In this document: one piece after another, positions 18,801 through 56,800 of the stretch
How the letters are laid out: each line of letters opens with the position of its first letter
Numbering within the stretch: the first letter of the stretch is position 1
DNA from: Paragordius varius
Taxonomy: Eukaryota > Animalia > Nematomorpha
NCBI GenBank assembly: GCA_964247055.1
Contig: OZ176054.1
Location: forward strand, 7,068,001-7,132,000
Reading direction: 5' to 3'
Length of the DNA: 64,000 nt
The notes under the pieces: generated by a model
The model's input: only the letters and a program-made list of their open reading frames with translations
The model's database searches: none
What the model was told of the DNA's origin: nothing
Position numbers and translations under genes: made by a program

Positions 18801-19727
18801 TTTTTCATATGTTTGACATACGAATATAAAATATCACCCTTAAAGTAATATTTATATTAAATTATTGTTGTTTTAGATATTGATGAATGTGCTTTGGGTA
18901 CCCATACATGCAATGATGAAGAGGTGTGTTTTAATTTGCAAGGAACGTACAAATGCGGAGATTGTCCAACTGGCACGAGGCGAGATGGTAAAATTTGTAA
19001 AGGTATGCGGCCAATTATTGGGTCCTGATGATTAACAATTTCAGAAAATTAAACATCGTTTATAAGAAAAATAACTTTAAAATTCATTTCTTGCTACTAA
19101 AGCTGGTATATTTGGCCTTTGATTTATCATTTAAGGTTTATGAGTTTATTAAATAAGATCCATATAAATTATATCAATTTCAATTTTTATTTAACGATAT
19201 TCAATCCATAGATATCAATGAGTGTGTCGAAAATATCCATGATTGTGATTTAAATGCTCAATGTATTGATGTAGCTCAAAGTTATACCTGTGAATGCAAC
19301 CCTGGTTTCAGCGGGGATGGTAAAACTTGCTCAGGTAAAGTGGAAGATTCAGTACTTAATATAAATTTTTAGCAAATTATCAGAATTATATTCAAATTTT
19401 TTAAACACCCTTTAAAAATCAAACTTTTCAAAAGTCGCCTAATAATTTTACACCAAAAATTATTTTATATTCTACATATATAATATATAAAAATATTTAA
19501 GAGCCTAGAATAAACTTAATTATTTACAATTGAGAAATTCATTAAATTTAACTTTAAAATTTGTCTAGATATTGATGAATGCGCATCTGTGACATTAAAT
19601 AAATGTGATGCAAATTCCCAATGTATAAACAACATGGGTGGTTACAACTGTACTTGTAACTTTGGTTTTAGCGGAAACGGATTTCAATGCACTGAAGGTT
19701 GATCTTAAATAAAAAATATCATATTTC

Positions 19728-25700: not shown

Positions 25701-28700
25701 GCATCGACGGGGAATGCCAAAGCCAAAAATGGAAATGGAAAAAACAATGGGAAACAGTCAGGCTTTCTTGTGTGCGATAGGGAAACGACTGATTGTATAG
25801 ATACCGAAGGATCTTATACATGTCAATGTAAACCAGGCTATCAAATTGATGTGGAGGAATTCATTAGAAAAAATGGGTTGAAAAACGAAACTTTTGGTAA
25901 GTTTCGACAATATTTTATCATTTTTTACGTACAATAAAAAACTTATGTTACATTTAAACCCATCATAGATTCAGAAGGAGCTGTATTTAATTATGCTCGT
26001 CGAAAGCGAATACTGTTTAAGTGCATCGATATTGATGAATGTCAAATCATGGTAAACCAATACATTGATGATAATGCTAAGAACTCTAATCGCACAACCA
26101 AAGTGGGTACTAAAAAACAAGGTAAACGATCGATAGCAAGCGGGGGTTTGAAGTTACCGACATCCTCTTGGAGTTCCATATCATCCAAATATACAAAGAA
26201 AAAACTTATACAATATGATACATTTTCTACCATGCAACATTTGGTACCATTAACAGACAAAGAAACGTCTCCTAACCTACAACATTGCCACGAGGATCGC
26301 GCCATATGCATAAACAATCCAGGTACTTTTATAGTTCTTAAGTTATTGTAATAAGGGGGTAATTGCGTTAAACACCTCACAAGGTATTATTATTAACTTT
26401 ATCAAATTAAAAAAATTAAGTCACTGAGAAAATCCACAATGCGATTTTTTTGGTTCATGATACGATTGAAACGTTAACATATGTTTGATAAAACTCTTTC
26501 TATTTACTTTTCAAACCGATTTCAAATTAGTGTCGGATAAAAAATATATCTAATAACTTTTTCCATCAAAGGATCATACACTTGTAAGTGTAAGACAGGC
26601 TTTAGAGGTGACGGTTTCTCGTGTGTCGACAGAAACGAATGTGAGGAGAATGATGATATTTGCGGCCCAAACACATCTTGCAAAAACAAAATCGGATCCT
26701 ACGAATGCCAATGTTTGCCGGGCTACTATGAAAAAACTAATAATCAAACTACCAAGGAGGAAATGAATGATCATTTTATATCTGTAAATGATATTGTTAA
26801 CGAAGTTGCCGAAGATTTTTTGGCTGAACAACAAAACTTAACTCTACCACACAACAAAAACAACACACTGAAAGGGAAATTAACACCTCAAACAATTCAA
26901 TGTGTCAATGTTAATGAATGTCAAACTGGGAAACATGTGTGCGATTTAACAACTAGTCAATGCATTGATAAAGGTTAATTACTTCTTCATAGGAATTAAT
27001 AGTTATAACTATCTTAAAACATTTACCAAATGATATCTGGGACAATTAATAAGGAAGATGGATTTTTAAAAATATTGTTTGATAACTTATCAGTGTGTCA
27101 TTCACGGTCATAACCAGTCAGTGTTTTAGAAATAAAATAAACTTTACTGATTAAACTTTGTTGAATAGTGTTATGTTTAATTAATATTTTTAGTTTTGAA
27201 AATTCCACATATATAAAAAAATTGATAACTTATACAGATATATCTATGTTAGAAAGGTGACTGATTTGAAATCTGTAATAGGGTTTATCTAATCAATTTC
27301 TAAGCACCCAAATAAATGATTACAATCCTATTATTTTATATCATTCTTTTTTAAAATAATATAGAGGGTACATATGCATGCGTGTGTCGCAAAGGTTTTA
27401 AAGCATCTTCCAAACATTCCAAATCCGCAACTACGAACGACATTGGGTTAAATTCTTTTAATTTACCGGCGGGTGAAAGCGTATTTCATCCTACCAACAA
27501 AGCCTACAAAAATGTTTATCGTTTTGCGTGTGAAGATATCGATGAATGTACCTCCGAAGTTGTATCTGAAAATGCAAATGTCAAGAACGAAATTGAAGAT
27601 ATGAATCAAAGTTTGCTTGCTAAAAATGGCCAAAATGACACGGGGGTATTACCTTGTCACCCATTAGCAACTTGTCAAAATACATTCGGTGCTTTCAAAT
27701 GCACATGTCTAAAAGGATACACCGGGGATGGAAAACGTAGTTGTTTAGGTAGGCTGATTTGCAAAGATTAACAATACTTTGGACTTTATTTTTTAATCAA
27801 ATTTAGTATACAATAACGAGGTATTATAGGTCATTTCAATATTGAGGGATAAAATTTACATGTTTATAGCCATATATGTGGTTTTTTGTTTATATTTTAT
27901 GGAAAAAATACAGTATTAAAAAATGAAAAATCTGATACATGGCAGCAGAAATATTAATAGAATCTAGAATTAAGCCATTAATACCGAAACGGCCTATAAT
28001 ATATCTCATTAATGGAATGGTTAGATATCAAAGAATGGCTTATAGTTTTTTTAAAATTTAAACATTAGTTATTGGGTTGTAAATGTAAAATGGCTATTTA
28101 TGTTGTATAGAAGTTTCCACGGTCAAAAGCACAGTAAAATTAATGGCATCATCAACTAATAAAGCGCAAATAACTAAAATATCCCCTACTTCTCTTGTAG
28201 CAACAAAAGGTACTACAATGAATCCAATAACAAGCTCTACAACAATATTTGATATAATTACAATGGAATCAACAACACCCTTTTCAAACCGCATACTTCA
28301 AGCCAGTGATCAAAAGTTACTAAGTAAACAAATAATTTTTTCTTGAATATAGCGTTTTTTTTTAGAAATGAGATGTATTTTGTTAAAAATGGGTGTTTTT
28401 CATACATAGTAACTTGATGTTGTTGAAAACCTAATTTATCATATTAATTAATAAATTTTTTTACAAAAAATCACAAAAGATCCTATATTCTTTATTAATA
28501 GAGCCGTTAAAAGCCGAAAAGCCTAAAATGATTATTATGGATGAAGGAGAAAAAGAGAGCAAAGCAAAAAAATCTGGTTTGATTAATAAATAATTGCTTA
28601 AAAATTACCTTTCTATTAAGGTTTAATTATTGTACCCTCTTTCCCTCATATTATATTTAGACCCAGTACTTATATCGTTCGAAAGCCTAAAAAATATTGA

Positions 28701-34700: not shown

Positions 34701-35610
34701 TTACCAATACACCACCCTTAATAACGAAAGATTCTCAATCCTTTACCATTATGTGTAATTATCCAATCACAGAGCTTAAAGCCGTTAGCGATTTGAATAT
34801 CTCGTACAATTTTAAAACATATTTCTTTTTGATTAAAGTTCCCTTTCAAATAGTTAAATAATATATTTTTATATTCAAGGGCCCAAAGAGCTTTAAGCCG
34901 TGGAAGTGATCAAACGTAAGAATTTTTATATAAACAATATTTTCAACTTATTATCACCAAAAACTTTGAATGTTTATTTATCGTTAATGTAATTTTTGAG
35001 ATATTGGGTTTATTTTTTACCATTTTTTAATTTTCCATATTTGCAATTATTCATTAACGTATAGTCAACGCTATTAAATATTAAATTGAATCAGATATTA
35101 CTTTCCAGGGATTCAAAATTCGTTAAAAGCATATTTCTTTAATATATATATTTAAACCATCCTCCATATTTAATTTTAAAATGATTTTGTTAGGATGGAA
35201 GAACCCGAAACAAAATTGAAAAATACTCCTGCACCCCTTAATTGTAATATGCAAATTTTAAATTCCAACAAATCGCTCATTAACGAAGCCAACGTCGGTG
35301 ATCAACTCATGTTTTACCTCCAATGTTCTGGTAAGCCTGCTAATAAAAATTCAATTGTAGATTGTGTTAATTTTTCTGTTATCATCAAATTTGCCCATTT
35401 GTATTTTTAAATTCTTTGTAGTTCTAAACTCATATTTTTGAGAAACATCGACAAGAAACAATGATTTAACTTACCGGTTACACCTTTATTGTATTTGTTA
35501 TTTATCCATAGTTTAACATTAAAACCACGAAATATATTTATAACTGATTTAATTTTAAAACAACTTTGATAACTGAAAAGAATGCAATACATTTAATCTG
35601 CGAATGTAGG

Positions 35611-35645
<35 letters not shown>

Positions 35646-36794
35646 AACTGTTTCTTTTTTATAAAATATCAATTTTAGTTGTATATGAAAATTTATTTTT
35701 CAATTTTATTGGTAAACAGATAGCTCTTATGGATTATTTGGGTACGATTGTTGGGCCCGAAATGTATTGGATAAGGATCAAAGCGTACAACTCGTGGATG
35801 AAGATGGGTAATTAATTTATACGCCAAATTTAATGTGATTTTATTTTAATTTTTTATGTTTGACAAAGTTTACCCATAGTAACCTAATATATCAATAAAA
35901 AAATTAAGTATTGTTGAATATACACATTTCCAATACATACTTAATAGTTTTGTCTTTATAACTGTACCTTATCTTATAATTTAGATGCTCAAAGGATCCA
36001 ACTCTGGTACAAAACTTCCAAAAAGAAGAAAATTCGAATGCAATATTTTCTCTTTTTAGGGCTTTCAAATTCCCATTTGATGCTAACATTCGATTTGAAT
36101 GTCGAATTAAGCCTTGTATAGGCCCTTGTGAACCGGTAAGTCATAAAATTCATATTATTCTTAAATTATTACATATTTAATAAAATCCCAAATTATGTTT
36201 CATAGACTGAATGTCAAGATTCCGATATAACGTATGGAAAGAAAAGGAAAAAACGTAGTATTGTCAATGCGGGTCAAATGATACCCTCCAATACTATATC
36301 ACTTAAGGCAACTGGTATGAGTTTAGGAAAATTGACTCCCGTTAAAATTGACACAAAAATTATAAATGGCGATAATATTAAACCAAATGTTACCGATTTA
36401 CAACAACGAAAAAGTAAAAAAGATAAAAATAGTAAATCTTTCCATAAATCTCAAGAAGTGAATAATAACACCTATAATATTCAAAATAATGAGAAAACAC
36501 GGCACACAAATGGTAAAACAGAACTGAACAAACATATAAAACACCTCCCGCCTGCAAACGTTATCGTTTCACAAGAGAAAATTTTGTTTAGCGTAATATC
36601 CATCAAAAATCCTAAGCCCCAAGTTACAGAGGAAAGCGTCATATACGACCGAAAAAGAGATGAGTTATCTAATTCCAAAGATAGATCTTACCTAGAAAGG
36701 GATAGTGGTGATTGGGGTATGTTTATATTTTTGCTATTCCCTAATAACCATTTTATATGGGTAAAAAAATTTAGATAATTTTTACATGGATACT

Positions 36795-36829
<35 letters not shown>

Positions 36830-38602
36830 TAAAACCAGTCAAAATTAATTTACGGAATTTTAAACGTTTTCCCAATGGTACCCGTCCATCCCTCATAATG
36901 TATTCAAACAAACTTATGCGGAAACCCAAAATTAAAAACAAAGGCACCAAACATAGCAATGTTGATTATTCCACTTTTAGACCAAAGCAAGAGGAATCCA
37001 CTATCACTTACCTCAAAGCGCGATCTAATTTCTCCATTCAAAATTTATTGCTAACCAACTCTACTGCCGATATTTTCACAGATATTATTGCTGGCGTAAA
37101 AGCAAAAAGAAAAAATGAACATCACCTCAAGGATTACTTTGACTTTATTGAAAGTGATTCAGACAATAACTCAAATATTGATGGTATATAACTTATATAA
37201 TTATACAGACAAAATGTAAAAACATAAAACAACTATTTTTTTTCAAAAGATGATAGTTTTAAGAAACTTGATTTAACGCCATAAACTAATTAAAAATTTT
37301 GCAAAATATAATTGAGTATGTTAACTATTTACACTATTCCCTATTTTTGGATTCAAAACGATGGGAGTGAAAAAATCAAGGATTTAATTAGTATTGTCTT
37401 TTAGAACAGGGATGTCCAAAACGCTTTTTTCGGCACACAAAAAGTGTATTTAAAAAATGTTAAAAAAATAGAAATGGATTACAAAAAAATATTTTCGATT
37501 ATTTAGAAGATATTCAAAATTGGGTAAAATAAATCAAAACATAAAGAAATTATCAAAGCAGCCGGGAAAATACTTGTGTACATCCCTGTTTTAGAAATAT
37601 AGAGTGGTGTTTTAGTTTTGCCTTGTTCCTATATTACTATAGTAATAATTAAATTGTTAACCTGCTTACTAACTTTTATAATGACGATATCTATATTTTA
37701 GCTATTTTGCATCATGTGACGCATTTTTACCAATGTTCTAATAGTAAAAACAAAAGTTTGATAAAGAGTGAACAATTTCACACGAAAATTCATAAATATA
37801 TACTCATTCAGTCTTTACTATCTAAATATCTATTTATTAGCGATTATGCCGGCAACGCATATCTTACGCTAAAACTTAATTTTAATATAGTTATCAATAG
37901 CAACCAATGTTTTATATTTTTACTATTTTAACAAAATTAGACATTACAAATGATATACAGCATCAAGAGCTTAAAAGCCTAGCCGACCTTGACATAGACG
38001 ATAACCATGGTATTCATGCCGTTCCAGTTACCTGTGTAAAACCAAAACAAATTTTCCTATTCGTCGGACTGAGCATCCTGATAATATTGATAGTTCTTAC
38101 CATTGGGTTTGTATATGTGCAGTATGGGAAAGGAAAACATTCTTCACTAAGTCTCAATGGTGGTAGCTCTATGTCAACCCTAACTTTTCAAAGCAATCTA
38201 AACCACGAATGCTCCGCAAATAGGTTTTTCCCCTGGCGTAATCAATGGCGGAACAATATACAAAACGAAAATTTATGTAAAGATAATCATCACGCATACT
38301 ATGTAAGTACACTGGCTACCCTAAACCAAAGCCATGCTAAAAACTTTCCATCTCAAGCCATGATGGATTATACAGCAACACCGCCATTCTTTAACAGAGT
38401 AAATGTTCCCTCTTACAATATACCCTGCGAAGTTATAGATAGGGCGTCGTCCTCTGACAAAATAATTACTAAAAACAATAAGAAAGAAGGAAGAAAAGAA
38501 ATACGAAAAATTAATAAAATAGGTAAAGAATCTACCCAACCTACATCCTGGGTTATACATGATAATTGTGTTGGGTATGTGCACGATGTTCAATCGAATT
38601 AA
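15848..38602 (+). CDS. Large fibrillin-like EGF/ZP transmembrane extracellular-matrix protein (FBN-1/Dumpy-like), ~3459 aa
   Basis: 35 hand-spliced exons totalling 10380 nt (divisible by 3): 15848-15916, 16271-16889, 18324-18440, 18612-18728, 18877-19002, 19212-19334, 19569-19697, 21066-21395, 21514-21642, 21736-21861, 21947-22433, 22687-23723, 24257-24649, 24724-25896, 25969-26322, 26572-26973, 27365-27748, 28111-28323, 28502-28576, 28661-28981, 29235-30074, 30174-30254, 31783-31848, 32797-32916, 33868-34050, 34143-34238, 34319-34506, 34664-34803, 34880-34915, 35194-35330, 35720-35807, 35985-36135, 36206-36716, 36827-37183, 37941-38602. Features: signal peptide [27 protein letters not shown]; LDLa-like [13 protein letters not shown]; ~25 EGF modules, mostly D[IV][DN]EC; ZP hallmarks ([63 protein letters not shown]); furin site RKKR; [25 protein letters not shown]. 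Small stalk exons are less certain than the EGF and ZP exons. Confidence 0.88.
19733..19777. repeat. (TA)n microsatellite abutting the foldback element; other (TA)n tracts at ~35612-35642, 36798-36825, 38843-38878, 42593-42612, 48101-48129
   Basis: Direct reading of the dinucleotide runs. Confidence 0.95.
19778..21010. mobile_element. 1.23-kb non-autonomous foldback/MITE element with ~540-bp inverted arms and TA flanks, in intron 7 of the EGF/ZP gene
   Basis: Left end TA|CACTAAGTACAAAAAAGAGGG, right end CCCTCTTTTTTGCACACAGTG|TA. ~19778-20320 is reverse-complementary to ~20470-21010. No ORF of note. Confidence 0.85.
31137..31642. mobile_element. hAT-superfamily MITE, 506 bp
   Basis: 8-bp target-site duplication attacaac at 31129-31136 and 31643-31650. 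Imperfect TIRs tatggttgtgc… / …gcacaacccta. Confidence 0.8.
33056..33550. mobile_element. MITE family with TATACCATTT[AG]CA termini and subterminal cttgaacacttcaagtt-like tandem repeats; other copies at 39543-40080, 46478-47592 (LINE-interrupted), ~62330-62798, partial ~56075-56150
   Basis: TIR-like ends tataccatttgca / aaattgtata, and ataccatttaca / tgtaaatggtata. Inverted arrays of ~21-bp degenerate units at both ends of each copy. Confidence 0.7.
37407..37588. mobile_element. hAT-type MITE, 182 bp, in the last intron of the EGF/ZP gene; duplicated at 44360-44541
   Basis: TIR cagggatg / catccctg with an 8-bp TSD ttttagaa on both sides in both copies, so it predates the duplication. Confidence 0.85.
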
Positions 38603-38842
38603 TTTTAATTTTATTATTACCTTAATAAGTATTTGGCAGACAATCTATTTACTACTGATTGGTGATATTTATATAATATCAATTTTGTATTTTTATAATA
38701 TTATGTCGTTTATATATTTAGTAAATGTCATTTTAATATCAACTATTATTTTGGCGACAATCATATGCTATTTTTACTCAAAATTATCAAATATTTAATT
38801 TTTTATATTCAAACCATGTTTATTATTGAATATAGTTTTACA

Positions 38843-38876
<34 letters not shown>

Positions 38877-40089
38877 ATTTAATTGCATTTGTATTACTTA
38901 ATGTCTATAAATGTTCAATAAATTACTACTTAACAAATTTATAATAACATATTTTATATAAACCATTACCTTGATTTATACGTCTAGACATAAACATATT
39001 TGTCTTAAGCGTAAAAAATTTGGAATATTGGATATTTAATTAATATATTGAAAAATTCAATAGGTTATTTGTTCAATTGAATAACAACAATTAAAAAATA
39101 TCAATAATTTTATCTCAACAAATTCAATTTTCAAGGACTACTAGATAATGAAAGTCATAAAATTTTGGTAATTAGTTTATATCCGTTCAGGCATAGTTAG
39201 GTAGTAACGTTCAATCTTGATACAATAGCCATAGCAACTTCTGGACGGAGCCTTTCGACTGTTACAATAAAAAAAGTAAGAACCATTTTATATAAATTAT
39301 GCATTAAAAAATTATATTGTAGCGGTGTATGATTATGAGATATTCGTATTATTGAGTAAAATAAACCAATTGATTATTTATTGTCTTAAGTGCAATAATT
39401 ATTAATATATTTTTTTACCATAACGTTTTTTGAACATGACTCAGCTAGGAATAATGATCATTTGCTTTTGCCATTATTTTTGCCAGGTTTAGTCATAAGT
39501 TTTAATCGGTTTTTAGTGAAAAACTAATTTTGAAAGGTCATTCATACCATTTACAGTTCAAGAGTCTCCTTGAACATCAAGTTGGCCCTTGAACACTTCA
39601 AGTTAATTCTTGAACACTTCAATTTAGTTTTTATACACTTCATGTTGGTTTTTCAACTTTTTTATTTTGTTTTTAACTTTTATCAATCAAACCAGGTATC
39701 ATTCATTTTTTATCATTATTAACCTATTATCTTTATTTAATCTATACTTTTAGATCAATAAAAAATTTTATCATACAGAAACCTATATTATAACAGGTAA
39801 ATGAAAAATATATAAATTTTCTGCGTTATTAATTAAATTTTTTTTGTTAAAAAATTAAAGTAAATTATTTTGGTAAAAAATATTTCGAACCAAAAAAGTC
39901 GATTTAAAATGAAAATTATTAATTTCAATTGAATAAATATATAATAAATAATTAAATTTAAGGTAAAAAATAATAAAAAATAATTACAAAAATTATAGTT
40001 AAATACAACAAGGATCAACTTGAAGTGTTTAAGGGCAAACTTGAAGTATTCAAGGACACTCTTGAAATGTAAATGGTATATTTATTTTA

Positions 40090-41000
40090 TTCAATATTGT
40101 ACATAGGCTTCTACACAATAAAGAGTTCAGCGAATGCATAATAATTTTCATCAAGTTTTGCTATGTGAGACGGAGCATCTATGTCGCAAAATGACTTTGA
40201 CATGTCTTCTGGCCAATTCCGGCCGTTTTTCGATTAATGCATGGCTTTGTTGGCGATAGCGCTGTGCACAAACGGGATCATCGGGTTCCAAAAGTACATA
40301 ATACAGAATATCGTTCTGATCCCATCAGGCACAGAGCACTTTGTCAAAACCATCTGGCATGGACGCGCTTGGCAAGGTTAGAGCCTAGATTTTTACGCTT
40401 TAAATTTACACAAAACAGCCATTTCTCGTCAACGACGCAAAAATAGATTTATTTTCTTGACGTTGAAGCTTTATTTCACATATAACTTTTCGATTTGGCG
40501 TTCATTTAAATTGGGAAACTATCAACCGAGTTTAGTCTTCTCGTTGCTCGTCATTTAATGATTGTTTTTTGTGATACATGTGATCTTCTGTTAATTGTTG
40601 TTAAGTTTGAGTTGGTTATTATTCAATCACTCTTGCACTATAGCGTGTTCGCAGTTGTGAGGTCTACCAGAGTACATACACTCATTACTCATGCATATGG
40701 AATCACAACTTTTAATATTTCAAGATTATGTTTCACATGTGTTTAATGATGGAGAATGTCCACCATATATTTCTGTCATCAGGATGATTTTCAACAGCCT
40801 TTTTGTTAAAATAAGAAAAATGTGTGCCGCAAATGTTTTTTTAAATACAAAATTCGGCATAATTACTGAATGGTAATAATACGCTAGTTTTTAGAAAACT
40901 CAACTGTTTATTTGTTGTTTGATGTCAGATGAACAAAATGGGGTTAACAAATAATGCCCTACGTACTTCGATGATGTCTTTTAGTTAAACCGGTAAGAAA
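40090..41000 (-). mobile_element. Degenerate mariner transposase relic; duplicate at ~47600-48050 has a ~500-bp internal deletion
   Basis: Minus-strand translation CVVDEKWLFCVNLKRK … LCA*WDQNDILYYVLLEPDDPVCAQRYRQQ matches the mariner TGDEKW and CVWWDQxGVIYYELL motifs. Stops and frameshifts are present. Confidence 0.85.
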
Positions 41001-41901
41001 ATATGACTTTGCATGTTAAGCATATAAACCTAAGACTTAATTAGGTATTCTGATATATTTATTAAAATGATAAAATAAGTTCAGATAATTATTTAAACAT
41101 ATAAAAAATTAAAAAATACAATTTTCATCAATAAAAATTATAACACTAACATGTCTTTAAAGACAAATTAACGGGTGTTAACCCTATGATTTTACGAAAT
41201 TTGTGAAGGTAACTGACCTAGTATATTATATGGAGTTTGCTATTCACAAAAATTGCAAAAAACTAATAAATCATATGCAGATTTATTGTTTACAAGATAT
41301 TCTGTGGCCCATATTATTATCTTTTGAGCAATACTCTAGAGTCGATTTAAATATAAATTATTATAAAAGTATCTATGATGTGGGGCCACAATAAAACTAT
41401 GCATTCTAAGATCTCATATATACACACAAAGTTTCAATGGATAGGAGGCTGTATAAAATTTAGACATTAGTATTTTGTAACTTTTTAATATTTGAGAATA
41501 TTGTTTGATTACCTTATTTGTACAAAAACCACTTTCCCAAAAATATTATGTTATAAGTAAGCTCTGGGCAAAGACATCCCAATTTGTGACCGTATACAAA
41601 AGTGAAAAAGTAATAGCTATGAAATAAATAATATTTGGTCTCATATTTATCCATCAACGCTTATTTAAAATAATATTTGATATACATTATAAGTAAAAAC
41701 TAATGGTATTTTCAATTAAATATTGCGCGAGATAGATAGCGTTTAAAAATCCTTTACCATTATGTGTAATTATCCAATCACAGAGCTTAAAGCCGTTAGC
41801 GATTTGAATATCTCGTACAATTTTAAAACATATTTCTTTTTGAAATTTAAAATTTCCTTTCAAATAGTTAATATATTTATTTCTAATTTCGTATATTCAA
41901 G

Positions 41902-44900
41902 GGCCCAAAGAGCATTAAGCCGTGGAAGTGATCAAACGTAAGATTTTTTAATAAACAATATTTTCAACTTATTATCACCAAAAATTTTGAATTTTTATCG
42001 TTAATGTAATTTATATTGGGTTTATTTTTATTTGCAATTACTCATTAACTTATAGTCAACGCTATTAAATATTAAATTGAATCAGATATTACTTGCCATG
42101 GATTCGAAATTAGTTAAAAGCATATTTTTTAAAAATATATTTGGGCCATCCTCCATATTTAATTTTGAAATAATTTTGTTAGGATGGAAGAACCCGAAAC
42201 AAAATTGAAAAATACTCCTGCACCCCTTAATTGTAATATGCAAATTTTAAATTCCAACAAATCGCTCATTAACGAAGCCAACGTCGGTGATCAACTCATG
42301 TTTTACCTCCAATGTTCTGGTAAGTCTGCTAATAAAAATTCAATTGTAGATTGTGTTAATTTTTCTGTTATCATCGAATTTGCCCATTTGTATTTTTAAA
42401 TTCTAGGTAGTATTAAATTCATATTTTTGAGAAACATGGACAAGAAACAATAATTTAACTTACACCTTTATTGAATTTGTGAGATTCTTAATTATCCATA
42501 TTTTAACTTTGAAACCACGAAATATATTAGTTTTAAATCTACTTTGATAACTGAAAAGGATTCAATACATTTAACCTGCGATTGTAGGCCAATATATATA
42601 TATATATATATATTTCCAACTGTTTCTTTTTTCATAAAATATCGAGTTTCATATATGAAAATTGATTTTTCATTTTATTTGGTAAACAGATAGCTCTTAT
42701 GGATTATTTGGGTACGATTGTTGGGCCCGAAACGTATTAGATAAGGATCAAAGCGTACAACTCGTGGATGAAGATGGGTAATTTATACGCCAAATTTAAT
42801 GTTTTATTTTAATTTTTTATGTTTGACAAAGTTTACCCATAGTAATCCAATATGTCAATAAAAAAATTGAGTATTGTTGAATATACACATTTCCAATAAA
42901 TACTTAATAGTTTTGTCTTTATAACTGTAACTTATCCTATAAATTTAGATGCTCAAAGGATCCAACTCTGGTACAAAACTTCCAAAAAGAAGAAAATTCG
43001 AATGCAATATTTTCGCTTTTTAGAGCCTTCAAATTCCCATTTGATGCTAACATTCGATTTGAATGTCGAATCAAGCCTTGTATAGGCCCCTGTGAGCCGG
43101 TAAGAATTAAAATTCATAAAATTCATAAATTATTACATATTTTATAAAATCCCAAATTATGTTTCATAGACTGAATGTCAAGATTCTGATATAACGTATG
43201 GAAAGAAAAGGAAAAAACGTAGTATTGTCAATGCGGGTCAAATGATACCCTCCAATACTATATCACTTAAGGCAACTGGTATGAGTTTAGGAAAATTGAC
43301 TCCCGTTAAAATTGACACAAAAATTATAAATGGCGATAATATTAAACCAAATGTTACCGATTTACAGCAACGAAAAAGTAAAAAAGATAAAAATAGTAAA
43401 TCTTTCCATAAATATCAAGAAGTGAATAATAGCACCTATAATATTCGTAATGATAAAACACGGCATAAAAATGGTAAAACAGAACTGAACAAACATATAA
43501 AACACCTCCCGCCTGCAAACGTTATCGTTTCACAAGAGAAAATTTTGTTTAGCGTAATATCCATCAAAAATCCTAAGCCCCAAGTTACAGAGGAAAGCGT
43601 CATATACGACCGAAAAAGAGATGAGTTATCTAATTCCAAAGATAGATCTTACCTAGAAAGGGATAGTGGTGATTGGGGTATGTTTATATTTTTGCTACTC
43701 CCTAATAACAATTTTTATATGGGTAAAAAAATTTAGATAAATTTTTACATGGATATTTTGTGTATATATATTTATAGTTATAAAACCAGTCAAAATTAAT
43801 TTACGGAATTTCAAACGTTTTCCCAATGGCACCCGTCCATCCCTCATAATGTATTCAAACAAACTTATGCGGAAACCCAAAACAAACAAAGGCACCAAAC
43901 ATAACAATGATGATTATTCCACTTTTAGACCTAAGCAACAGGAATCCACTTACACTTACCTCAAAGCGCGATCAAATTTCTCCATTCAAAATTTATTGCT
44001 AACCAACTCTAGTGCCGATATTTTCACAGATATTATTGCTGGAGTAAAAGCAAAAAGAAAAAATGAACAACACCTCAAGGATTACTTTGACTTTATTGAA
44101 AGTGATACAGACAATAACCCAAATATTGATGGTATATAACTTATATAATTATACAGCCAAAATGTAAAAACATAAAAACAACTATTTCTTTCAAAAGACA
44201 AAGTTCATTTTTCAAAACTTGATTTAACGGCATAAACTAATAAAAACTTTGCAAAATATAATTGAGTATGTTAACTATTTACACTATTCCCTATTTTTTA
44301 ATTTAAAACAATGGGAGTGAAAAAATCAAGGATTTAATTAGTATGGTTGTCTTTTAGAACAGGGATGTCCAAAACGCTTTTTTCGGCACACAAAAAGTGT
44401 ATTAAAAAAATGTTAAAAAAATAGAAATGGAGTACAAAAAGATATTTTCGATTATTTAGAGGATATTCAAAATTGGGTAAAATAAATTAAAACATAAAGA
44501 AATGATCAAAGCAGCCGGGGAAATACTTGTGTACATCCCTGTTTTAGAAATATAGAGTGGTGTTTTAGTTTTCAAGCCTTGTTCGTATATTACTATAATA
44601 ATAATAATTGTTAACCTGCTTACTAACTTGTATAATGACGATATCTATATTTTAGGTATTTTGCTGCATCATGCGACGCATTTTTATTAAGGTTTTAATA
44701 GCAAAAACAAAAGTTTGATAAAGGGTGAGCAATTTCACACAAAAATTCATAAATATATACTCATTCAGTCTTTACTATCTAAATATCTATTTATTAGCGA
44801 TTATGCCGGCAACGCATATCTTACGCTAAAACTTAATTTTAATATAGTTATCAATAGCAATCAATGTTTTATATTTTTACACTTTTAACAAAATTAGATA

Positions 44901-45559
44901 TTACAAATGATATACAGCATCAAGAGCTTAAAAGCCTAGCCGACCTTGACATAGACGATAACCATGGTATTCATGCCGTTCCAATTACCTGTGTAAAACC
45001 AAAACAAATTTTCCTATTCGTCGGACTGAGCATCCTGATAATATTGATAGTTCTTACCATTGGGTTTGTATATGTGCAGTATGGGAAAGGAAAACATTCT
45101 TCACTAAGTCTCAATGGTGGTAGCTCTATGTCAACCCTAACTTTTCAAAGCAATCCAAACCACGAATGCTCCGCAAATAGGTTTTTCCCCTGGCGTAATC
45201 AATGGCGGAACAATATGGAAAACGAAAATTTATGTAAAGATAATCATCACGCATACTATGTAAGTACACTGGCTACCCTAAACCAAAGCCATGCTAAAAA
45301 CTTTCCATCTCAAGCCATGATGGATTATACAGCAACACCGCCATTCTTTAACAGAGTAAATGTTCCCTCTTACAATATACCCTGCGAAGTTATAGATAGG
45401 GCGTCGTCCTCTGACAAAATAATTACTAAAAACAATAAGAAAGAAGGAAGAAAAGAAATACGAAAAATTAATAAAATAGGTAAAGAATCTACCCAACCTA
45501 CATCCTGGGTTATACAAGATAATTGTGTTGGGTATGTGCACGATGTTCAATCGAATTAA
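41902..45559 (+). CDS. Duplicated 3' exon cassette (ZP-C, furin site, spacer, TM, cytoplasmic tail) of the EGF/ZP gene; open reading frames and splice sites intact
   Basis: Exons 41902-41937, 42183-42319, 42690-42777, 42949-43099, 43170-43677, 43778-44131, 44898-45559, all AG/GT-flanked with the same phases as copy A. The only exonic indels are two 3-nt deletions. No signal peptide of its own. The preceding exon fragment 41748-41814 has no acceptor. Confidence 0.75.
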
Positions 45560-46724
45560 TTTTAATTTTATTATTATAAAAAAGTATTTGGCAGACAATC
45601 TATTTACTACTGATTGGTGATATTTATATAATATCAGTTTTGTATTTTTAAAATATTATGTCGTTTATGTACATTTGCAAATGTTATTTAAATTTCAACT
45701 ATTATTTTGGCGACAATCATATGCTATTTTTACTCAAAATTATCAAATATTTAATTTTTTAAATTCAAACCATGTTTATTATTGAATATAGTTTTACAAT
45801 ATCACATATATATATTTAATTGCATTTGTATTACTTAATGTCTATAAATGTTCAATAAATTACTACTTAACAAATTTATAATAACATATTTTATATAAAC
45901 CATTACCTTGATTTATACGTCTAGACATCAACATATTTGCCTTAAGCGTAAAAACAATTTGGAATATTGGATATTGAATTAATATATTGAACAATTTAAT
46001 AGGTTATTTGTTCAATTAAATAACAACAATTAAAAATATCAATAATATTATCTTAACAAATTCAATTTTCAAGGACTATAGATAATGAAAGTCATAAAAT
46101 TTTGGTAAATAGTTTATATCCGTTCAGGCATAGTTAGGTAGTAACGTTCAATCTTGATACAATGGCCATAGCAACTTCTGGTCGGAGCCTTTCGACTGTT
46201 ACAATAAAAAAGTAAGAACCATTTTAAATAAATTATGCATTACAAAATTATATTGTAGCGGTGTATGATTATGAGATATTCGTATTATTGAGTAAAAGTA
46301 ACCAATTGATTATTTATGTCTTAAGTGCAATAATTATTAATATATTTTTTTACCATAACGTTTTTTGAACATGACTCAGCTTGGAATAGCGATCATTTGC
46401 TTTTGCCATTATTTTTGCCAGGTTTAGTCATAAGTTTTTATCGGTTTTTGGTGAAAAACTAATTTTGAAAGGTCTTTTATACCATTTGCACTTCAAGAGT
46501 GTCCTTAACACTTCAAGTTGGTCCTTGAAATTTCAAGTTGGTTCTTGAACACCTCAAGCCTTAAACACTTCAAGTTGTTCTTCATCTTTTTACTTTGTTT
46601 TTAACTTTACTCAATCAAACCATGTATCGTCATCCTTTTTATCATTACTACTATTCTCTTTATTTCTAAACTTTTTTAATATCAACTTTTTATCATTCAG
46701 AAACCGTATATCTTTATTGATTTA

Positions 46725-47265
46725 TTAAACAGCGACACCCCAGTAAAAGTAGTAAATGAAATCCTATTCTTAGGCTCTCTAAAAGTTATCAACGGATTCT
46801 CCACGCTAGATATTAAACGCCGCATATCATTAGGAAAGTCAGCTGCGAACAAGTTGACTAAATATGGATTATAAAGATATCACTATGAAAACTAAAGCCA
46901 GAGTAATGAAATGCATGGTTTTCCGGTAGCTATGCTGCCGAAAGGACACAAAACTGAATGATAAAAAAGGATTGTAGCATTTGAAATGTGGTGTTGGAGG
47001 AGAATGTTGAATTTAGATGATCTGAGAAGATTATAAATGAAACAATAAGAGAACAATTTATATTGAGAGTCATTTAATGGGATCTATAATAAAAAGGATG
47101 TTCACGTATATTGGACACATTTTTAAAAGTACATCCGTTAAGATGGATTTGATTTTTGAGAAATTGAAGGGAAAAGAAAAAAAGGGACACCGATGTTAAG
47201 ATGGCTGGACAATGTGAAGAGGAATCTGGTAGATAGTATAATAATAGCATGCGAAGAGGCGAGAA
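46725..47265 (+). mobile_element. RTE-clade non-LTR retrotransposon 3' fragment nested in the MITE of copy B only
   Basis: Translation fragments LFLGSL…DIKRRISLGKSAANKLTK, DITMKTKARVMKCMVF, KRIVAFEMWCWRRML, FTYIGHI. Frameshifted. Absent from copy A (39770-39840). Confidence 0.85.
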
Positions 47266-48102
47266 TTGGTCATTTTTATTTCCAAGGGGTCGAACTCAAC
47301 CTAAAGAATTACCTACCTATAAAATTTAAGTTTTTTGGTTTAATTACAATTTGTTTGTTAAAAACGTTAAGAATTAAATGATTTTGTTGAGTTGAAAAAA
47401 ATATTTCGAAACAAAAAAGTCTCTTTTACCTGAAAATTATTAATTTTAAAAGAATATATATATATATATAATAAAATTTAAGGTAAAATAATAAAATAAA
47501 AAAACTTGCAAAAATTATGGTTTAATACAACTTGAAAAAATTAAGGACTAACTTAAAGTGTTCAAGGACATTCTTGAAGTGCAAATGGTATATTTATTAT
47601 ATCCAAAATATTGTACATAGGCGTTTACACATTTAAGAGTTCAGCGAATGCGAAAGAATTTTCCATCAAGTTTGAAAGGTTTTGCTATGTGAGACAAAGC
47701 ATTTATGTCGCAAAATCACTTTGCCATGTCTTCTGGCCGATTCTGGTTGTTTTTTGCTTAATGCAAGGCTAAAATTACATTTGTTGGCGATAGCGTTGTG
47801 TATTAACGGGTTCAGCGGGTTTCGAAATTGCATAATACATAATATCGTTCTTATCCCATCAGGCAGAGAGCACTCTTGCCAAAGCGATCTGGCATTTGTG
47901 TTAATGAACTCGCTTAGAAAATAATACGCTAGTTTTTTAAGAACTCAACTTATGTCTATCGTTTAATGTCCGATGAATGAAATGGGGTTATCAAATAATC
48001 ATCTGCGTACTATTCGTAGATGTAATACCTTAGTTAAACCGATAATAAATAAAGACTTTACTGTTAAGTATATAAACCTGATAGATTTAATTAGGTGTTT
48101 TG

Positions 48103-48134
<32 letters not shown>

Positions 48135-51079
48135 CAAAATAAATCAGATAATCTTTTAAATATACAAAAAAATTAAATAAAACACAATATCGGGACCTGA
48201 TTCTATAATTTTACGAAATTTGTGAATAGGTAACTGACCTAGATATTATATGGAGTTTGCTATTTACTAAAATTTCATAAAACTAATAAAACATATGCAC
48301 ATCTATTTTTTAAACAGCTATATTCTGTAACCCATATCATTATTTTTTCCAGTATTGCTCTAGAGCCGATTCAGATATAAATTATTATATAAGTATCTAT
48401 GATATTGGGCCAAAAACTATGCATTCTAAGGGATCAAATTTAGCCCTTAACAGTTAACTAAAAAATTAAGCCTTTTTAATATTAAAGAATATAATCTTAT
48501 TTTTACAAAAACAACTTTCACAAATATATTATGTTATAAGTAAGCTCTGGGCAAATACATCCCAATATGTGACCGCGTACAAAAGTGAAAAAGTAATAGC
48601 TGTTAAAATAATTATGGCCTCATATTTATCCATCAGCGCTTATTAAAAATAATATTAGATAATTATAAGTAAAAATCACTGCTAATTTCCATTAATTATT
48701 CTGTGATTGATAATGTTTAAAATATAGCAATATATTTTGTCGAGATGTAAATTTATATTTTTCGTTTTTTCTTGCTTTAAGTCAATCATATTGCTATTTA
48801 AAGAAACGATATCTAATAATATTAGGACAAATTAGCAATGTGTTAATATTCATTTTCAAAAAATGCTGTTAAGGTCCCCTTAAATTATATAAAATACAAG
48901 CACGGTACTGGAAAATATCTCGAAAAAGTTCTTGTTTAAAAATTCGAATCTTTCATTTCAATAAAAAAGAGTTAAAATATATAGTCCCAATAATAAAAAT
49001 TACAAATAATTAAGCCAAAATTGAAATATATTTACCAAATCCACCTGCTGTAATACTGATTAAAAATATAACAAGTATGCACAATCCATGATAACAATTT
49101 ATAAATAATCGGATATACATAAGGCGTAAAAACAAAAAATTAAATTGATTTAATATATTTTGGCCAAAACACTTTTTGCTTAAAATAATAAACAAGTTTA
49201 TGCATAGTAACAGATTAACATAGGTCGACAAAAACAATTATAATGTTCATATATTTGTAATTTTAATATTAATAAATCCGAGCTTTTTCATACTTCAAAC
49301 AATTTCAATTTATATGAAATATGAGGGAGGATGGTAACTATTTCAAGGATATATACATGTGGCTAAAGTCGTTGTCGATTTATACCTTTTTCGTTGATTT
49401 ATGTGCGCCAATTTTCTCTGTTATAAGTAATGGATATAAGTTTATGTAAATGTGTTTTAAGTTAAATTTTCCGTCCAACGTATTTTACAGCGACCGCATC
49501 TTCGTTTCTCCTCTAAGTTGCTTTTTATATGATACAGATTTTTTGCTCTAACGGTCAGTGTCTTACGATATCTTTGTTTTAAAACAATGACCAGATAGAG
49601 CCATTATGGGTTTGTTTTTCGAAGAATTACCGAGTTTTCTTATCATGAAAGGGGTGGTGCCCACTGTAGCCAACATTTTTTAATCATAGCACTACCTGGC
49701 TAAATTATTATAATTAATATAGTAATTATGATATCGATTAATATTAGCGAATAATGAGAAATTTTTTTTAAACAATACGCTTTCTAGCCATAAAATACAT
49801 CTTTACAATGGTTTAGAAATTTAATTAAATGTGTAAATGGCGAAGTTTTGGCGACTAATTGATTTTGCAATCAACGTTTTTTCAATTCAAATTAAATCAA
49901 TCATAATAATTTGACTCTCCAGAAGTGCAAATTAATAACCAAATACGAGCAGAAAATCTATAATTATTGGGTTATTTATAATAGTTAAAATTATAAACGA
50001 AATATGTATTTTTTCCTGATGTTGACTAAATCAATGCGCCTATAATGCGCCTACCAATTAATTAAATTTTTAAAAACCGCGCCAGCTAACACCGTCGCCG
50101 CGTTGCTCCGTCGTTCCGTTTTGAATATAAAAATTAGTTGGGTTAAAATTAAAAACCCAGAAAATATGGTTTATAATTTTGATGAATAAATGTTTAAAAA
50201 AATTATCCATTTTTATCAAATTATTTTTTTGATAATATAGCATACATTAAAAATTCTAATCGCGAATTCTTGCCTTTTTGCCTATATTCTAAGAATAATA
50301 ACCCATTTAAAAGGTGGAAAAATTTTGTATCTTTGGAGCCTACACTTAAAAAATAAAACTTTATAAAAATATTTTATCGTATAATATAGTTTATAATGTA
50401 TTTAAATCTCGTGGAATAAGGTCTCTCTCTACCTTTTACCAAAAAAAGTTGCATAATGTGCTCTTTTGCGATATTCCCACATAGAACAATTATTACAAAA
50501 GTGTAAATAATTTTAAATCCGATTAATGTACGCAAATTTCTTAATTACCACAACAGTGAAATTCCTTATATTTGCGATCCTAAAATCAAAGGCACCTTGC
50601 AAACTTCTATATATTTCTCTATCAATATATTTTATCTTTTGTATTCCTAATTTTGTGCACTTGTAATTATTAGTCTCAATTTTAATATTATGTAAAAATC
50701 ATGAAAGAAAAATAATTGATTAGGATCTAAAACGGTTTTGATTTATAATACATTTATTGCAACTTAAGCAGTTGGAAACAAATATTCCTTTGATTCTAAT
50801 TAGAGTAGGACTTCAGGACTGGTTAAATTCATATATTCCTTAAAAAATGTTACAAATTAAAATCATTGCAAAGTTTGATCTTATATAACATTGATGGACC
50901 GAAAAATTAAAAAAGATTTATTTTAAAAAATTGAATATTCCTTATTTATGGATAAATCTGAAAGGAAAAATTTAGCCAACAAAACATGTGTACATTAACT
51001 AAATATAATTGCAATATAACCACTTTTTCTATTTGCATCAATGTTATATGTGATTTGAATAACTTTAGCGTTATAATTA

Positions 51080-51893: not shown

Positions 51894-52563
51894 ATGTTAA
51901 GTGCTTATAGCGATAATATTCCAGATATAAATTGGCAACCACAATTTGTTTCTATGGAGACAACGTATTTCTAATATAATCATTTAGTATGGGTCAATTT
52001 TCTATAGAATTATATTGGAAGCATACACCCAACACTTGCCGGAATTTTGCTGAACTAGCAAGAAAAGGATATTACGACAATACCATAATTCATCGCATAA
52101 TTACAGACTTTATTGTTCAGGGTGGTGATCCTACCGGCACAGGTTTTTTTATACCTTATGTTAGGTCATGGTGGTGCATCTATATATGGAAAATATTTTA
52201 ATGATGAAATTCATCCTGATCTAAGGCATACTGGTAATTTTTTTGACGCAAACTTATTCAACTTTTTAACAAATAATTGCTAAGTATTCAAAATAAAACA
52301 AGGTCACATTATTGCATCAACATTATATATTTATTCTTATAGGAGCTGGAATCATTGCTATGGCCAATAGTGGACCAAATACAAATGGAAGTCAATTTTA
52401 CATTACGTTAGCTCCTGCGCAACACTTAGATGGAAAACATACAATTTTCGGCCGAATTTCTAAAGGTATGGGTGTTATCAAAAAAATGGGTATGTTACCA
52501 ACTGATGAAAATGATAAACCCACGGAAGATATAATTATATATAGAGCGAATGTTTTATCTTAA
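51894..52563 (+). CDS. PPIL1: Peptidyl-prolyl cis-trans isomerase-like 1 (spliceosomal cyclophilin), 171 aa
   Basis: Exons 51894-51964, 51988-52142, 52165-52233, 52343-52563 (516 nt). Translation …[124 protein letters not shown]… has the PPIL1-type WQP…LELYWKH signature. Confidence 0.95.
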
Positions 52564-53844: not shown

Positions 53845-53893
53845 GCTTTAATTTTGAATGATTTTATGAACATATGGAAATATAAGACATTCC
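53845..53893. promoter_or_regulatory. Putative minimal bidirectional promoter region between the NOL7-like ORF and USP5
   Basis: Only 49 nt separate the two divergent ATGs (53844 minus, 53894 plus). Inferred from geometry only. Confidence 0.45.
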
Positions 53894-56800
53894 ATGCTAT
53901 CGGTCACACAAATGTTTGATTTTTCTGAAAATTTGGCTCTTGTACAATCAGTTGAAGCCGCAACTAAAATTTACAAGGATGAGTGTATGTATTGCTTCGA
54001 TAATCCCGAAACAGAAACTGGTATATTTGTATCCTTAAAAACATTCTATGGTTACTGTCAACACCATTTGGATGTACTTTTCAACAAAATTCCACAGATA
54101 TTTTTGCATTATAAAAAAACTAAGCTGTTGGACGATAAGCCAGTCGCAAAAGTTACTAAATTAGCTATTGGAGGTGAACACGGTTTCCAAGTTAATAAGC
54201 AATTTCAATATCATGAACAATATACACTATATATCATGCCTGATAAATTGGAATACAATATATCAGAAACTCAACTGCCAAGTCAACTTACCCAATGTAT
54301 AAAGGATGTAATCGCAGCCATACCTGCTCTAAAAGCTACCGAAATTGATATGAAATTATTGGAATGGGATGGAGAGCAACGCCAAATTACGAAGCATGCC
54401 TACACACTAATACAAATTCCTCAATCCGAAATCCCAAATTTTCCTATAGATCTTACTAACTCCGATTTAAAATGCCGAGATTGCGACGTGACCGAAAATA
54501 TATGGTTGAATCTTAGTGATGGGGCTATCGTATGTGGACGACGAAACTTTGATGGTTCTGGCGGAAATAACCATGGTATCGAACATTGGAAAAAAACTCA
54601 GTACCCACTTGCAGTAAAGATTGGAACGATAGATGGTGAGAGCATGAGCGCAGACGTTTTCTCCTACGATGAAGATGATATGGTCTTAGATCCGAATCTT
54701 GAATCTCATTTAGCTCATTTAGGTAAACTGTTTGTTCAATTTTATACGATATTTTCACTAAATATTTATGGTTTCAATTTTTTATATTTTAATTATTGAA
54801 CCTAAACCATTTATATTTTGGACGTTTCCGTTTTCAAAGCAATTTTTATCCCCTGTTTTAGAGTCTAAAATTTGGACAGCTCCAAAACACGATTTAACTA
54901 AACAGCTGATTTTAAATATCCAGTTTTTATTCAAAATGCAAACTAAAAGATCATAAAGATTATTTACATTTTTCAACCATAATACACATTGCCTATTTTT
55001 ATAAATTGTTAGTTTGACAGGATTTCAATTTTATCAGTAACAAAAGGAACTATTATTTCAATATGGAATAGAATAACAACAAATATTTTTTAAAAATTGA
55101 ATATAAAGGACAACAAACAGTTATTCACATCCATGTTTATTCTGTTTAATGCTGACGACGGACATCCTTTATAGTGTCCGAAACGATCGCACTATTTATT
55201 TATTATTTTATATGAGACATTTTAAATAAATTTCCATATATTTTTATCGTATTATCGATGCACCTAAAAAGCTCAAGAAAGCATATTTTTAAATTTGCCT
55301 TTATACCTTAAATATTTTTTTAGATATTTAAATTTGAAATCGCTATGGGATATAAAACTACTTCAAAATGTCATGGAGTATTAATATACAAATAATTTAA
55401 TTATTCAGATACAACGAATATGCCAGAAAAATACATAAAAATTAATTAAATTATATGTTAATTTGTAAAATTAGTTTGAATTGATTTTTTTAACGGATCA
55501 CTAAAGCTTTTTGAATTTTGGTTTTAAAGTGGCTCCAAATAAAGCTCATGGTTTGGTTTTGATTAGTGTATAAAATATGTTCATTTTCAATGTATATAAT
55601 TTTCAAAGATACAAAAATCCTAAATTTGTTTTAGTGTATAATGGCCAAATATCAATGTTAATTTATTTTTATTAATTTTTGACCGTAAATTTTATGCATT
55701 CAGTATGATAATTTGAAGTTTCGTCAAAGGTTGAAACTTAATATTTGATATTGTATAATTTGTCATGTTAATCGTTTTTTTTGACATACAGGGATTGATA
55801 TGTCCAAGTTAAACAAAACTGGTAAAACTATGGCCCAGTTAGAGATTGAGATGAATGAAACGTACAGAAATGAATGGAATTCCATACAAGAACTAGGGAA
55901 AAAATTAATTCCAGTTTTTGGACCTGGTCTTACAGGGATTTATAATTTGGGAAATACCTGTTACATTTCATCCATTCTTCAAATTCTTATGAGTTTACCA
56001 CGTTTCCAACAGTCCTATTTTCAAAATTATGAATCTAACATGATTAAAGGTTTATTTATTTTCAAACCGTATTAAATATACCATTTACAGTTTAAATTTA
56101 CCCTCGAACAAATCAAATTAACCCTCGAACAATTCAAATTTACCCTAAAATAAATGTGTTTTTAAGATTAAATATTATCTATATTTTTTAAAAAAGGATA
56201 AAATCAAAATAATACAAAATAATAAACTTTTCCATAAAAATTTATTTAATTTTAATGATTCCCGAAATTTCATATTTTTTTTAGGGTGAAATTGAATCGT
56301 TAATAATATAATGATGCGTGTATCACGCGCATCGCTGTAACTTGAAACCGATGATTTTGAAATAAAAATGGAATTTAAGATTTCAGAGAATTTTGCATTT
56401 TTATATATCTTTTGATGTTACATCAACATAATAATATTAAAATAATTTAAATTTCAAAAGCTACATCTTTAAAAATGGGAAACTTAAGTATAGAATAAAT
56501 AGTTTATTTAAATAGACAAAGTATAATAGTTAGATAGATGGCTTGTTGTGAAAGGAATTCTTGGCCTCCCGTCGTGACGGAGTTTATGTGTTTGATCATT
56601 GCATTGATGGTTTTTTTGTTTAACCGATCCCCGGCTTTTATATTTTTAGCCTGCAAGTCTTGGGTAATTTTATTCTCCCATTTAATTGTTGGACGACCAA
56701 CTATGTTTTGTTTGTTTAGCTTGAAATTTGTTATATTTTTATCCAATTATCATTATCTAATCTTTGTATATGATCGTAGTAGCCGAGTCTACGGATCTGT

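Follow-up and report, generated by a model that had tools for sequence, protein, structure and literature searches.

The 3' end of a putative apical-matrix gene of Paragordius varius is present twice, head to tail, in the genome assembly, and both copies carry an intact set of terminal exons. The stretch of DNA analyzed here, referred to as the window, comprises 64,000 nt of contig OZ176054.1 (GCA_964247055.1, positions 7,068,001-7,132,000). Our tentative preference is for a partial duplication that is real, and probably recent or still polymorphic, with the second cassette (B) an unused spare.

Judged from its sequence, the gene appears to encode a large FBN-1/Dumpy-type apical-matrix protein from an AT-rich animal. 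In the predicted architecture, calcium-binding EGF modules stand in arrays and are accompanied by Ser/Thr-rich stretches, a putative ZP module, a furin site, a transmembrane (TM) helix and a tail. Pfam EGF_CA matches were obtained at 24675-25934 (E = 6e-49) and 22613-23740 (E = 7e-21). Single ZP exons fell below Pfam thresholds, the top match being the ZP-C-type domain VERL_C (E = 0.063), and a phmmer search of the PDB with the ZP exons gave no match; Atlas features of exon 32 pointed to PF00100 clusters (0.94; 204 shared features; 10 of the 10 best hits). The KKRKKR motif sits 11 residues past the final ZP-C cysteine, and the TM segment consists of 23 hydrophobic residues with Kyte-Doolittle 19-mer means of up to 2.15 or more. 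The 219-residue protein encoded by the last exon had no match in a word search or in an exhaustive phmmer search of 1.84 billion representatives. C. elegans FBN-1 and Drosophila Dumpy are likewise rich in calcium-binding EGF modules and have Ser/Thr-rich stretches. FBN-1 also shows the C-terminal order predicted here, with a ZP module (residues 2438-2674 in FBN-1), a furin site immediately after it (2676-2679) and then a TM segment (2745-2767) (PMC4395870). However, furin site and TM segment are separated by a spacer of ~65 aa in FBN-1 and of ~305 aa in the present gene, which also carries a ~160-aa tail without detectable relatives, and PMC4395870 describes no duplicated 3' cassette for fbn-1.

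Self-comparison of the window resolved units A and B as a single collinear head-to-tail tandem repeat with a unit of 7.0 kb (Table 1). The opening 96 nt of the two units are identical, and identity with gaps counted is 92.6% between 34737-39788 and 41748-46711. After 39788 and 46711 there follow three less similar blocks (76-85%) that close at 41747 and 48721. Likeness between the units is ~93-97% over the initial 5 kb, whereas the final 2 kb show 76-86% and contain 0.5-kb indels; the unique final 650 nt of the A and B flanks are only ~80-86% alike. A search for inverted repeats or TIRs at the copy-specific insertions gave nothing clear, and no match was returned by Pfam on the flank ORFs or by Rfam over 33-50 kb of the window.

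Table 1 Features of the tandem repeat and its two terminal cassettes (window coordinates).
Feature	Position	Strand	Remarks
Repeat unit A	34737-41747	+	3' part of split ZP exon, seven terminal exons, 3' UTR, 3.1 kb downstream flank; from self-comparison
Repeat unit B	41748-48721	+	Collinear with unit A; from self-comparison
A/B junction	41747..41748	.	GTTTAAA/AATCC; 1 nt microhomology
Copy A split exon, 3' part (duplicated)	34737-34803	+	Phase-2 donor at 34803
Copy B orphan exon fragment	41748-41814	+	Lacks an acceptor (AA in place of AG); in-frame TAA 41744-41746
Copy A linker and ZP-C exons	34880-34915, 35194-35330, 35720-35807, 35985-36135	+	
Copy B linker and ZP-C exons	41902-41937, 42183-42319, 42690-42777, 42949-43099	+	
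Copy A exon with end of ZP-C, furin site and spacer start	36206-36716	+	KKRKKR furin site 36239-36256
Copy B counterpart of ZP-C-end/furin exon	43170-43677	+	Furin site 43203-43220
Copy A spacer exon (exon 34)	36839-37183	+	Highest divergence among the exons (17 substitutions, one 3-nt indel relative to B)
Copy B spacer exon	43790-44131	+	Other animals mostly carry these B-type letters
Copy A last exon	37941-38602	+	TM helix 38051-38119; tail ~160 aa; stop 38600-38602
Copy B last exon	44898-45559	+	TM helix 45008-45076; stop 45557-45559
First AATAAA past stop A	38917-38922	+	Counterpart past stop B: 45854-45859
Insertion in A flank only, ~0.5 kb	40361..40874	.	Partly repetitive
Insertion in B flank only, ~0.6 kb	46712..47320	.	

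Exons were called by open frame together with AG and GT sites and were joined locally to check frames and count differences. The initial annotation had proposed that copy B begins mid-exon and that the seven downstream exons remain intact, and both statements stand: the first piece of B has AA in place of an acceptor and an in-frame TAA just upstream, and in neither copy have the seven exons lost their AG/GT sites, phase or open frame. Each cassette encodes ZP-C, the KKRKKR furin site, the spacer, the membrane helix and the tail, with zero disabling changes across 2 kb of coding sequence, and an AATAAA lies ~300 nt 3' of each stop. The proposed compatibility of donor 34803 with acceptor 41902 is borne out, both being phase 2, and two full terminal exon sets are reachable in frame from this donor, acceptor A lying 77 nt away and acceptor B 7.1 kb away, past a poly(A) signal. 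A GTAAGT inside the last exon (38303) was considered as a route from cassette A to cassette B and was rejected because its phase of 0 does not match the phase-2 acceptor.

Recounting of the A/B differences reproduced the 10 substitutions previously listed up to the furin site, all synonymous and 6 of them within the 151-nt exon; 10 synonymous and 0 non-synonymous differences would be expected with P ~1e-7 if neutral. Nine of the synonymous differences fall in the linker and ZP-C exons (41902-43099 in B), in which the protein is identical. Copy A and copy B read T and A at 34892/41914, T and C at 35763/42733 and G and A at 35769/42739, and the six sites of the 151-nt exon lie within 43015-43096 of B. 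Between furin site and TM helix there are 8 synonymous and 17 non-synonymous nucleotide changes and two 3-nt indels, and from TM helix to stop there are 0 synonymous and 4 non-synonymous changes. Substitutions amount to 1.9% in exons versus 6.6% in introns. The contrast noted earlier between indel-rich introns and exons with only two 3-nt indels, both in-frame, corresponds to 14 versus 1.0 events per kb, and the 2 exonic events compare with 27.9 expected from the intron rates (P ~3e-10). One intronic insert specific to B lies around 41883-41890. Neither the part through the furin site nor the TM helix differs in protein between the cassettes, and the ends are 97% identical overall, with 19 substitutions and 2 one-residue indels in the cleaved-off part formed by spacer, TM helix and tail. 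With no protein difference before the furin site, either cassette would release the same mature ectodomain. The signature is one of purifying selection, and it is the same as that expected for two alleles of one working cassette; the synonymous-only pattern is no demonstration of selection on a second cassette.

Other animals were represented by short Logan contigs (samples S1 and S2 and run X5), depth being contig depth; a presumed RNA run (X8) yielded 0 contigs for the window. These contigs differ from the window by ~5%, a level to be read beside the 6.6% of the A/B introns, and the A flank differs from other animals by ~6-7%. At the exon 32 sites 43024, 43027, 43072, 43090 and 43096, S1, S2 and X5 all carry A-type letters. 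Exon 34 of S1 and S2 is mostly B-type, with 4-5 non-B letters where A differs at 17. Because two other animals thereby combine an A-type exon 32 with a mostly B-type exon 34, the A/B differences are shared, recombining polymorphisms and not fixed copy-specific changes, and their level equals the divergence found between individuals.

Such differences are also what would be seen if the locus were single-copy and the animal heterozygous, with haplotype B placed behind haplotype A by the assembler or by gap-filling and only one cassette on each chromosome. We regard this uncollapsed haplotype as quite possible, its odds being close to those of a real duplication. The A/B divergence of the gene body equals that between individuals, and the synonymous bias and near indel-free exons are as for two working alleles. 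In S1, contigs matching B exactly have depths of 411 and 301 versus 640-720 in adjoining unique sequence, or about half. Moreover, a real duplication predicts twofold depth, and the finding that the last exon is close to A-flank depth argues against it in both samples: the long last-exon contig stands at 533 versus 683-720 for the unique A flank in S1 and at 248 versus 205-211 in S2. One S2 contig enters the unit start without a branch, coming from 52 letters that do not resemble the A flank, and in a de Bruijn graph this speaks against the junction in S2. Among the listed contigs (S1, S2 and other runs, all short) none bridges 41747/41748, and the loose-end letters of contigs found no placement within the window. 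Deducing bridging from bin depths was tried and rejected as non-unique. False heterotype duplications stem mainly from high local heterozygosity (PMC9516828), and the present case resembles them in its adjacent copies, allele-level synonymous-biased differences and heterozygous genome.

However, false duplications are mostly separated by gaps (Ko et al. 2022, PMC9516828), and there is no gap between the present copies: the 64-kb window contains no N, the A/B junction included, and the joined sequences there have no homology or overlap able to connect the end of A to mid-exon sequence. The pair is also the sole large tandem duplicate within the window. Contigs of exons 32-34 stand at 1.3-2.9x flank depth in two animals, the excess covering 42873-44156, in a depth record that is internally inconsistent, with the last exon and unit start at ~1x flank, and that is only weakly GC-related. 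Finally, the flanks diverge by 14-24% and carry 0.5-kb indels, ~3x the difference between animals, such that the allele-like A/B difference holds for the gene body and fails for the final 2 kb of flank.

The reading that we tentatively prefer, a real partial duplication, draws on two of these observations. For such a junction to stand in an overlap-based contig, some read should carry it, which supports a real junction, and the low likeness of the A and B flanks, set against the small difference between animals, fits paralogues better than ordinary alleles. The tandem copy of the last 7 kb of the gene would have arisen from a non-homologous break-and-join with one breakpoint inside an exon and the other between genes. 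With a B exon fragment that lacks an acceptor, and with B placed past the stop and poly(A) signal of cassette A, the transcript would normally end in A, and cassette B would be an unused or seldom-used spare. Cassette A should win by default because its acceptor is near and that of B is distant and beyond the poly(A) signal. Cassette B may be intact since it would represent another allelic lineage of the single working cassette, acquired either by exchange between two divergent homologues or by later gene conversion, and its selection as a second C-terminus would not be required. Were B spliced in, furin cleavage would still release the same ectodomain. A young intrachromosomal duplication should have left near-identical copies, yet the divergence is 6.6%, which argues against it. 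This divergence needs either homologue exchange without breakpoint homology or an old duplication, and the latter fits badly with the apparent absence from two animals.

An alternative hypothesis, which we consider unlikely, is that the duplication is real and that the donor at 34803 is joined to either 34880 (A) or 41902 (B), making the two cassettes candidate alternative C-termini. Two precursors would then differ in spacer, membrane-anchor surroundings and cytoplasmic tail, depending on whether poly(A) site A or distal splicing wins the competition. Compatible phases, intact splice sites, a stop and AATAAA of its own in each cassette and the undamaged coding sequence are consistent with this hypothesis, and the old-looking flanks suggest lengthy retention. 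However, there is no protein difference before the furin site or within the TM helix, such that the mature products would not differ; the other 19 substitutions vary between animals; the proximal acceptor is the nearer by far; and an allelic origin accounts for the intactness. A fuller form of the hypothesis, improbable as well, is a retained duplication in which one giant ZP-matrix precursor would receive either spacer/anchor/tail cassette by poly(A)/splice competition, the same polymer subunit would be routed or cleaved differently by tissue or stage, and gene conversion would keep ZP-C identical. In the immunoglobulin heavy chain, for example, competition between polyadenylation and splicing selects the secreted or the membrane end, each encoded by its own set of 3'-terminal exons. 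The present arrangement is alike in having one upstream body and two terminal exon sets, each with a stop and a poly(A) signal. In contrast, the immunoglobulin-type ends are clearly different proteins of documented use, and the ends described here are 97% identical, share the same mature part and are candidates only.

If real and used, cassette B would be a fresh case of partial tandem duplication giving rise to a new alternative 3' end, here in a phylum about which little is known and in a protein expected to shape cuticle and precuticle. The main present value is one of caution: in a highly polymorphic genome, finding a duplicate intact and with synonymous-only differences is no proof that it is selected, because two alleles of one working gene look just the same as such a duplicate, whether they were stacked by recombination or by the assembler. 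For annotation, neither two ZP genes nor two isoforms should be counted here without read support. At PEP1 of Arabis alpina it is reportedly the 5' end that is duplicated, with expression shown, and the present case concerns the 3' end. PEP1 is described as a comparable partial tandem gene duplication in which the remaining exons are shared and the transcripts overlap (PMC3527215).

The two tandem 7-kb repeat units that hold the 3' end of the ZP-matrix gene, termed A and B, are best described as a partial tandem duplication of that 3' end, possibly a haplotype artefact. In a self-comparison of the window, they stand out as a single large direct repeat of ~7-kb period. The first 5 kb of A and B align at 92.6% including gaps (~93–97% per 250-nt window, with exons at 98–99%), and the last 2 kb retain only three alignable blocks of 76–85%. 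Intronic (TA)n microsatellites have unequal lengths in the two copies (35612–35643 and 42592–42615; 36800–36826 and 43759–43771), and reads are apparently cut at 42585–42622. There are no N bases anywhere in the window. The A/B junction reads GTTTAAA/AATCC and the end of unit B reads GTTTAAA/ATATAGC, such that microhomology at 41747/41748 is limited to 1 base and the joined sequences are otherwise without homology. One hypothesis is that the assembler stacked the haplotypes of a single-copy locus, which we consider a serious possibility, if short of an even chance. However, a non-homologous joint in gap-free sequence favors a real junction, because an overlap assembler yields such a join only if reads carry it, and the unique flank ends are 14–24% apart, ~3 times the distance between animals.

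Coordinates of the repeat units, cassette landmarks and downstream neighbors
Feature	Position	Strand	Remarks
Unit A	34737–41747		Head to tail with unit B; self-comparison
Unit B	41748–48721		Directly after unit A; self-comparison
A-only insertion, 0.5 kb	~40361–40874		A flank (3' of last exon); self-comparison
B-only insertion, 0.6 kb	~46712–47320		B flank (3' of last exon); self-comparison
KKRKKR furin site	A 36239–36256; B 43203–43220	+	After last ZP-C cysteines
Hydrophobic helix, 23 residues (predicted TM)	A 38051–38119; B 45008–45076	+	
Cyclophilin, PPIL1-like	51980–52560	+	Pro_isomerase E=1e-19; downstream neighbor
USP5-like deubiquitinase	53870–61140	+	zf-UBP_var, zf-UBP; downstream neighbor

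The gene encodes many calcium-binding EGF modules in plus-strand exons from ~18.3 kb on (Pfam EGF_CA E=6e-49 and 7e-21), followed by Ser/Thr-rich stretches without Pfam matches and, from ~34.3 kb on, by ZP-module-like exons. No single exon reached the Pfam Zona_pellucida threshold, the top Pfam match of single ZP exons being VERL_C, a ZP-C-type domain (E=0.063), and PDB sequence searches with the ZP exons gave no match. All 10 of the best ESM Atlas feature neighbors of the 50-residue exon 35986–36135 are ZP-C clusters (PF00100), the first at 0.94 with 204 shared features. Assignment of these exons to a ZP module is well supported and falls short of formal proof because the gene model was searched only exon by exon. 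A spacer of ~305 residues separates the furin site from the hydrophobic helix, behind which a tail of ~160 residues runs to a TAA. For the helix and this putative cytoplasmic tail (37943–38599), neither a word search nor an exhaustive phmmer search of 1.84 billion representative proteins found a relative. The predicted architecture is that of C. elegans FBN-1, whose published layout has EGF modules, Ser/Thr-rich regions, a ZP domain with the furin site directly behind it, and a TM segment (PMC4395870).

The initial annotation had read the two cassettes as candidate mutually exclusive C-termini, and its underlying observation is correct in every point checked. Copy B begins mid-exon: its fragment 41748–41814 has AA instead of AG before it, and an in-frame TAA stands at 41744–41746. 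In both copies, the seven downstream exons all retain AG/GT sites, open frames and phase, and donor 34803 and acceptor 41902 are alike phase 2. The 10 A/B differences that precede the furin site are all synonymous, and six fall in the 151-nt exon (P ~1e-7 under neutrality). Between furin site and helix, synonymous differences number 8 and non-synonymous ones 17, with two 3-nt indels in addition; from helix to stop the counts are 0 and 4, respectively. Constraint is weak behind the furin site. Substitutions amount to 1.9% in exons versus 6.6% in introns, and indel events to 1 versus 14 per kb, the only exonic indels being the two of 3 nt where 28 would be expected. Over 664 residues, the cassette proteins are separated by 19 substitutions and two one-residue indels, all of which lie behind the furin site and outside the helix. 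Judged from these patterns, purifying selection has acted on the exons of both copies for almost the whole time since the sequences split. Such a signal could arise because the second cassette is itself selected, because two alleles of a single cassette were wrongly stacked by the assembler, or because a real duplication took copy B from another allele (by divergent-homologue exchange or later gene conversion). The synonymous-only divergence, which was the main argument for alternative cassettes, therefore does not discriminate.

Contigs of animals other than the assembled specimen bear on allelic origin. These are short Logan contigs with one depth figure each, from which simple variants were perhaps dropped; the best run shares 72% of sampled words with the window, and no run resembles the assembly's own source. 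None of the RNA runs contains the gene, and a presumed RNA run yielded no contig on the window. The DNA contigs differ from the window by ~5% in the gene body, the same level as the A/B difference there, and by 6–7% in the A flank. In exon 32 (B, 42949–43099), sites 43024, 43027, 43072, 43090 and 43096 carry only the A-type letter in 3 of 3 DNA runs; in exon 33, sample S1 is B-type save at 43414; and in exon 34, samples S1 and S2 are mostly B-type (4–5 other letters; A differs at 17), yet have the A-type ATT. Because A-type and B-type letters are mixed across exons 32–34, the "copy-specific" differences are shared polymorphisms in varied combinations rather than fixed paralogue differences. 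S1 contigs identical to B over 206–239 nt (intron and 3' region) have depths of 301–411 versus 640–720 in nearby unique sequence, or about one copy in two. Were the duplication present in S1 and S2, last-exon depth should be twice that of the flank; the long unbranched last-exon contig is instead at roughly flank depth, with 533 against 683–720 in the unique A flank of S1, and 248 against 205–211 in S2. One S2 contig, moreover, passes from 52 letters unlike the A flank directly into the unit start; as a de Bruijn path would break there if the A-flank-to-exon junction were present too, this contig argues against that junction in S2. The parity in copy number, together with the unbranched contig, points to a single cassette in these two animals. 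No contig bridges 41747/41748 among those listed (>600 pieces lie outside the listing). Speaking against a single cassette, contig depth over exons 32–34 (42873–44156) in these two animals is 1.3–2.9 times that of the last exon and unique flank, an excess for which GC content does not account, and one animal has a back-joint 44151->41837; further partial copies elsewhere, or another duplication boundary, may be responsible. Animals under one species label are ~5–7% apart in non-coding DNA (40500–46400; runs X1, X4 and X5); this reflects either extreme polymorphism within the species or a label that covers cryptic species. A published hairworm genome of equal GC content (26.9%) is reported to have a heterozygosity of only 0.55%.

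The allele-level divergence of the gene body, the shared polymorphisms, the half-depth B-type segments and the apparent single cassettes all point to an assembly artefact or at any rate to allelic origin, as does the expectation that a young within-chromosome duplication yields near-identical copies, which A and B are not. Weighing this evidence against the junction, we give a little under even chances to a real duplication whose second cassette is an unused spare. Genuine use of B as an alternative C-terminus is possible but unsupported, and we consider it unlikely. Were the duplication real, transcription would reach cassette A before B, and donor 34803 would meet the A acceptor behind a 76-nt intron. 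The terminal exon of A has its stop and, 315 nt later, AATAAA. Use of B would require polymerase readthrough of this poly(A) signal and 3 kb of flank with donor 34803 still unspliced; for this reason, and as splicing is generally co-transcriptional, A would be the default end. Use of B would alter the precursor only behind the furin site, and cleavage would then leave an unchanged secreted ZP polymer subunit.

Several repeats were also observed. A short dispersed high-copy repeat occupies 44147–44330 in a copy B intron (A counterpart ~37199–37380); its summed contig depth is 9,000–19,000 in X1 versus ~600 nearby, numerous contigs of other loci terminate at 44147–44199, and no clear terminal inverted repeats were found at 44147–44330. 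Just downstream of the B-only insertion lies a short open frame, 47160–47378 (...GTPMLRWLDNVKRNL...), with a resemblance to C-terminal portions of the reverse-transcriptase ORFs of LINEs; a Pfam search of the frame gave no match. A ~1-kb dispersed element, with copies 77% alike, occurs in direct and inverted orientation (9408–10378, 19825–21042), one copy lying within the EGF part of the gene.
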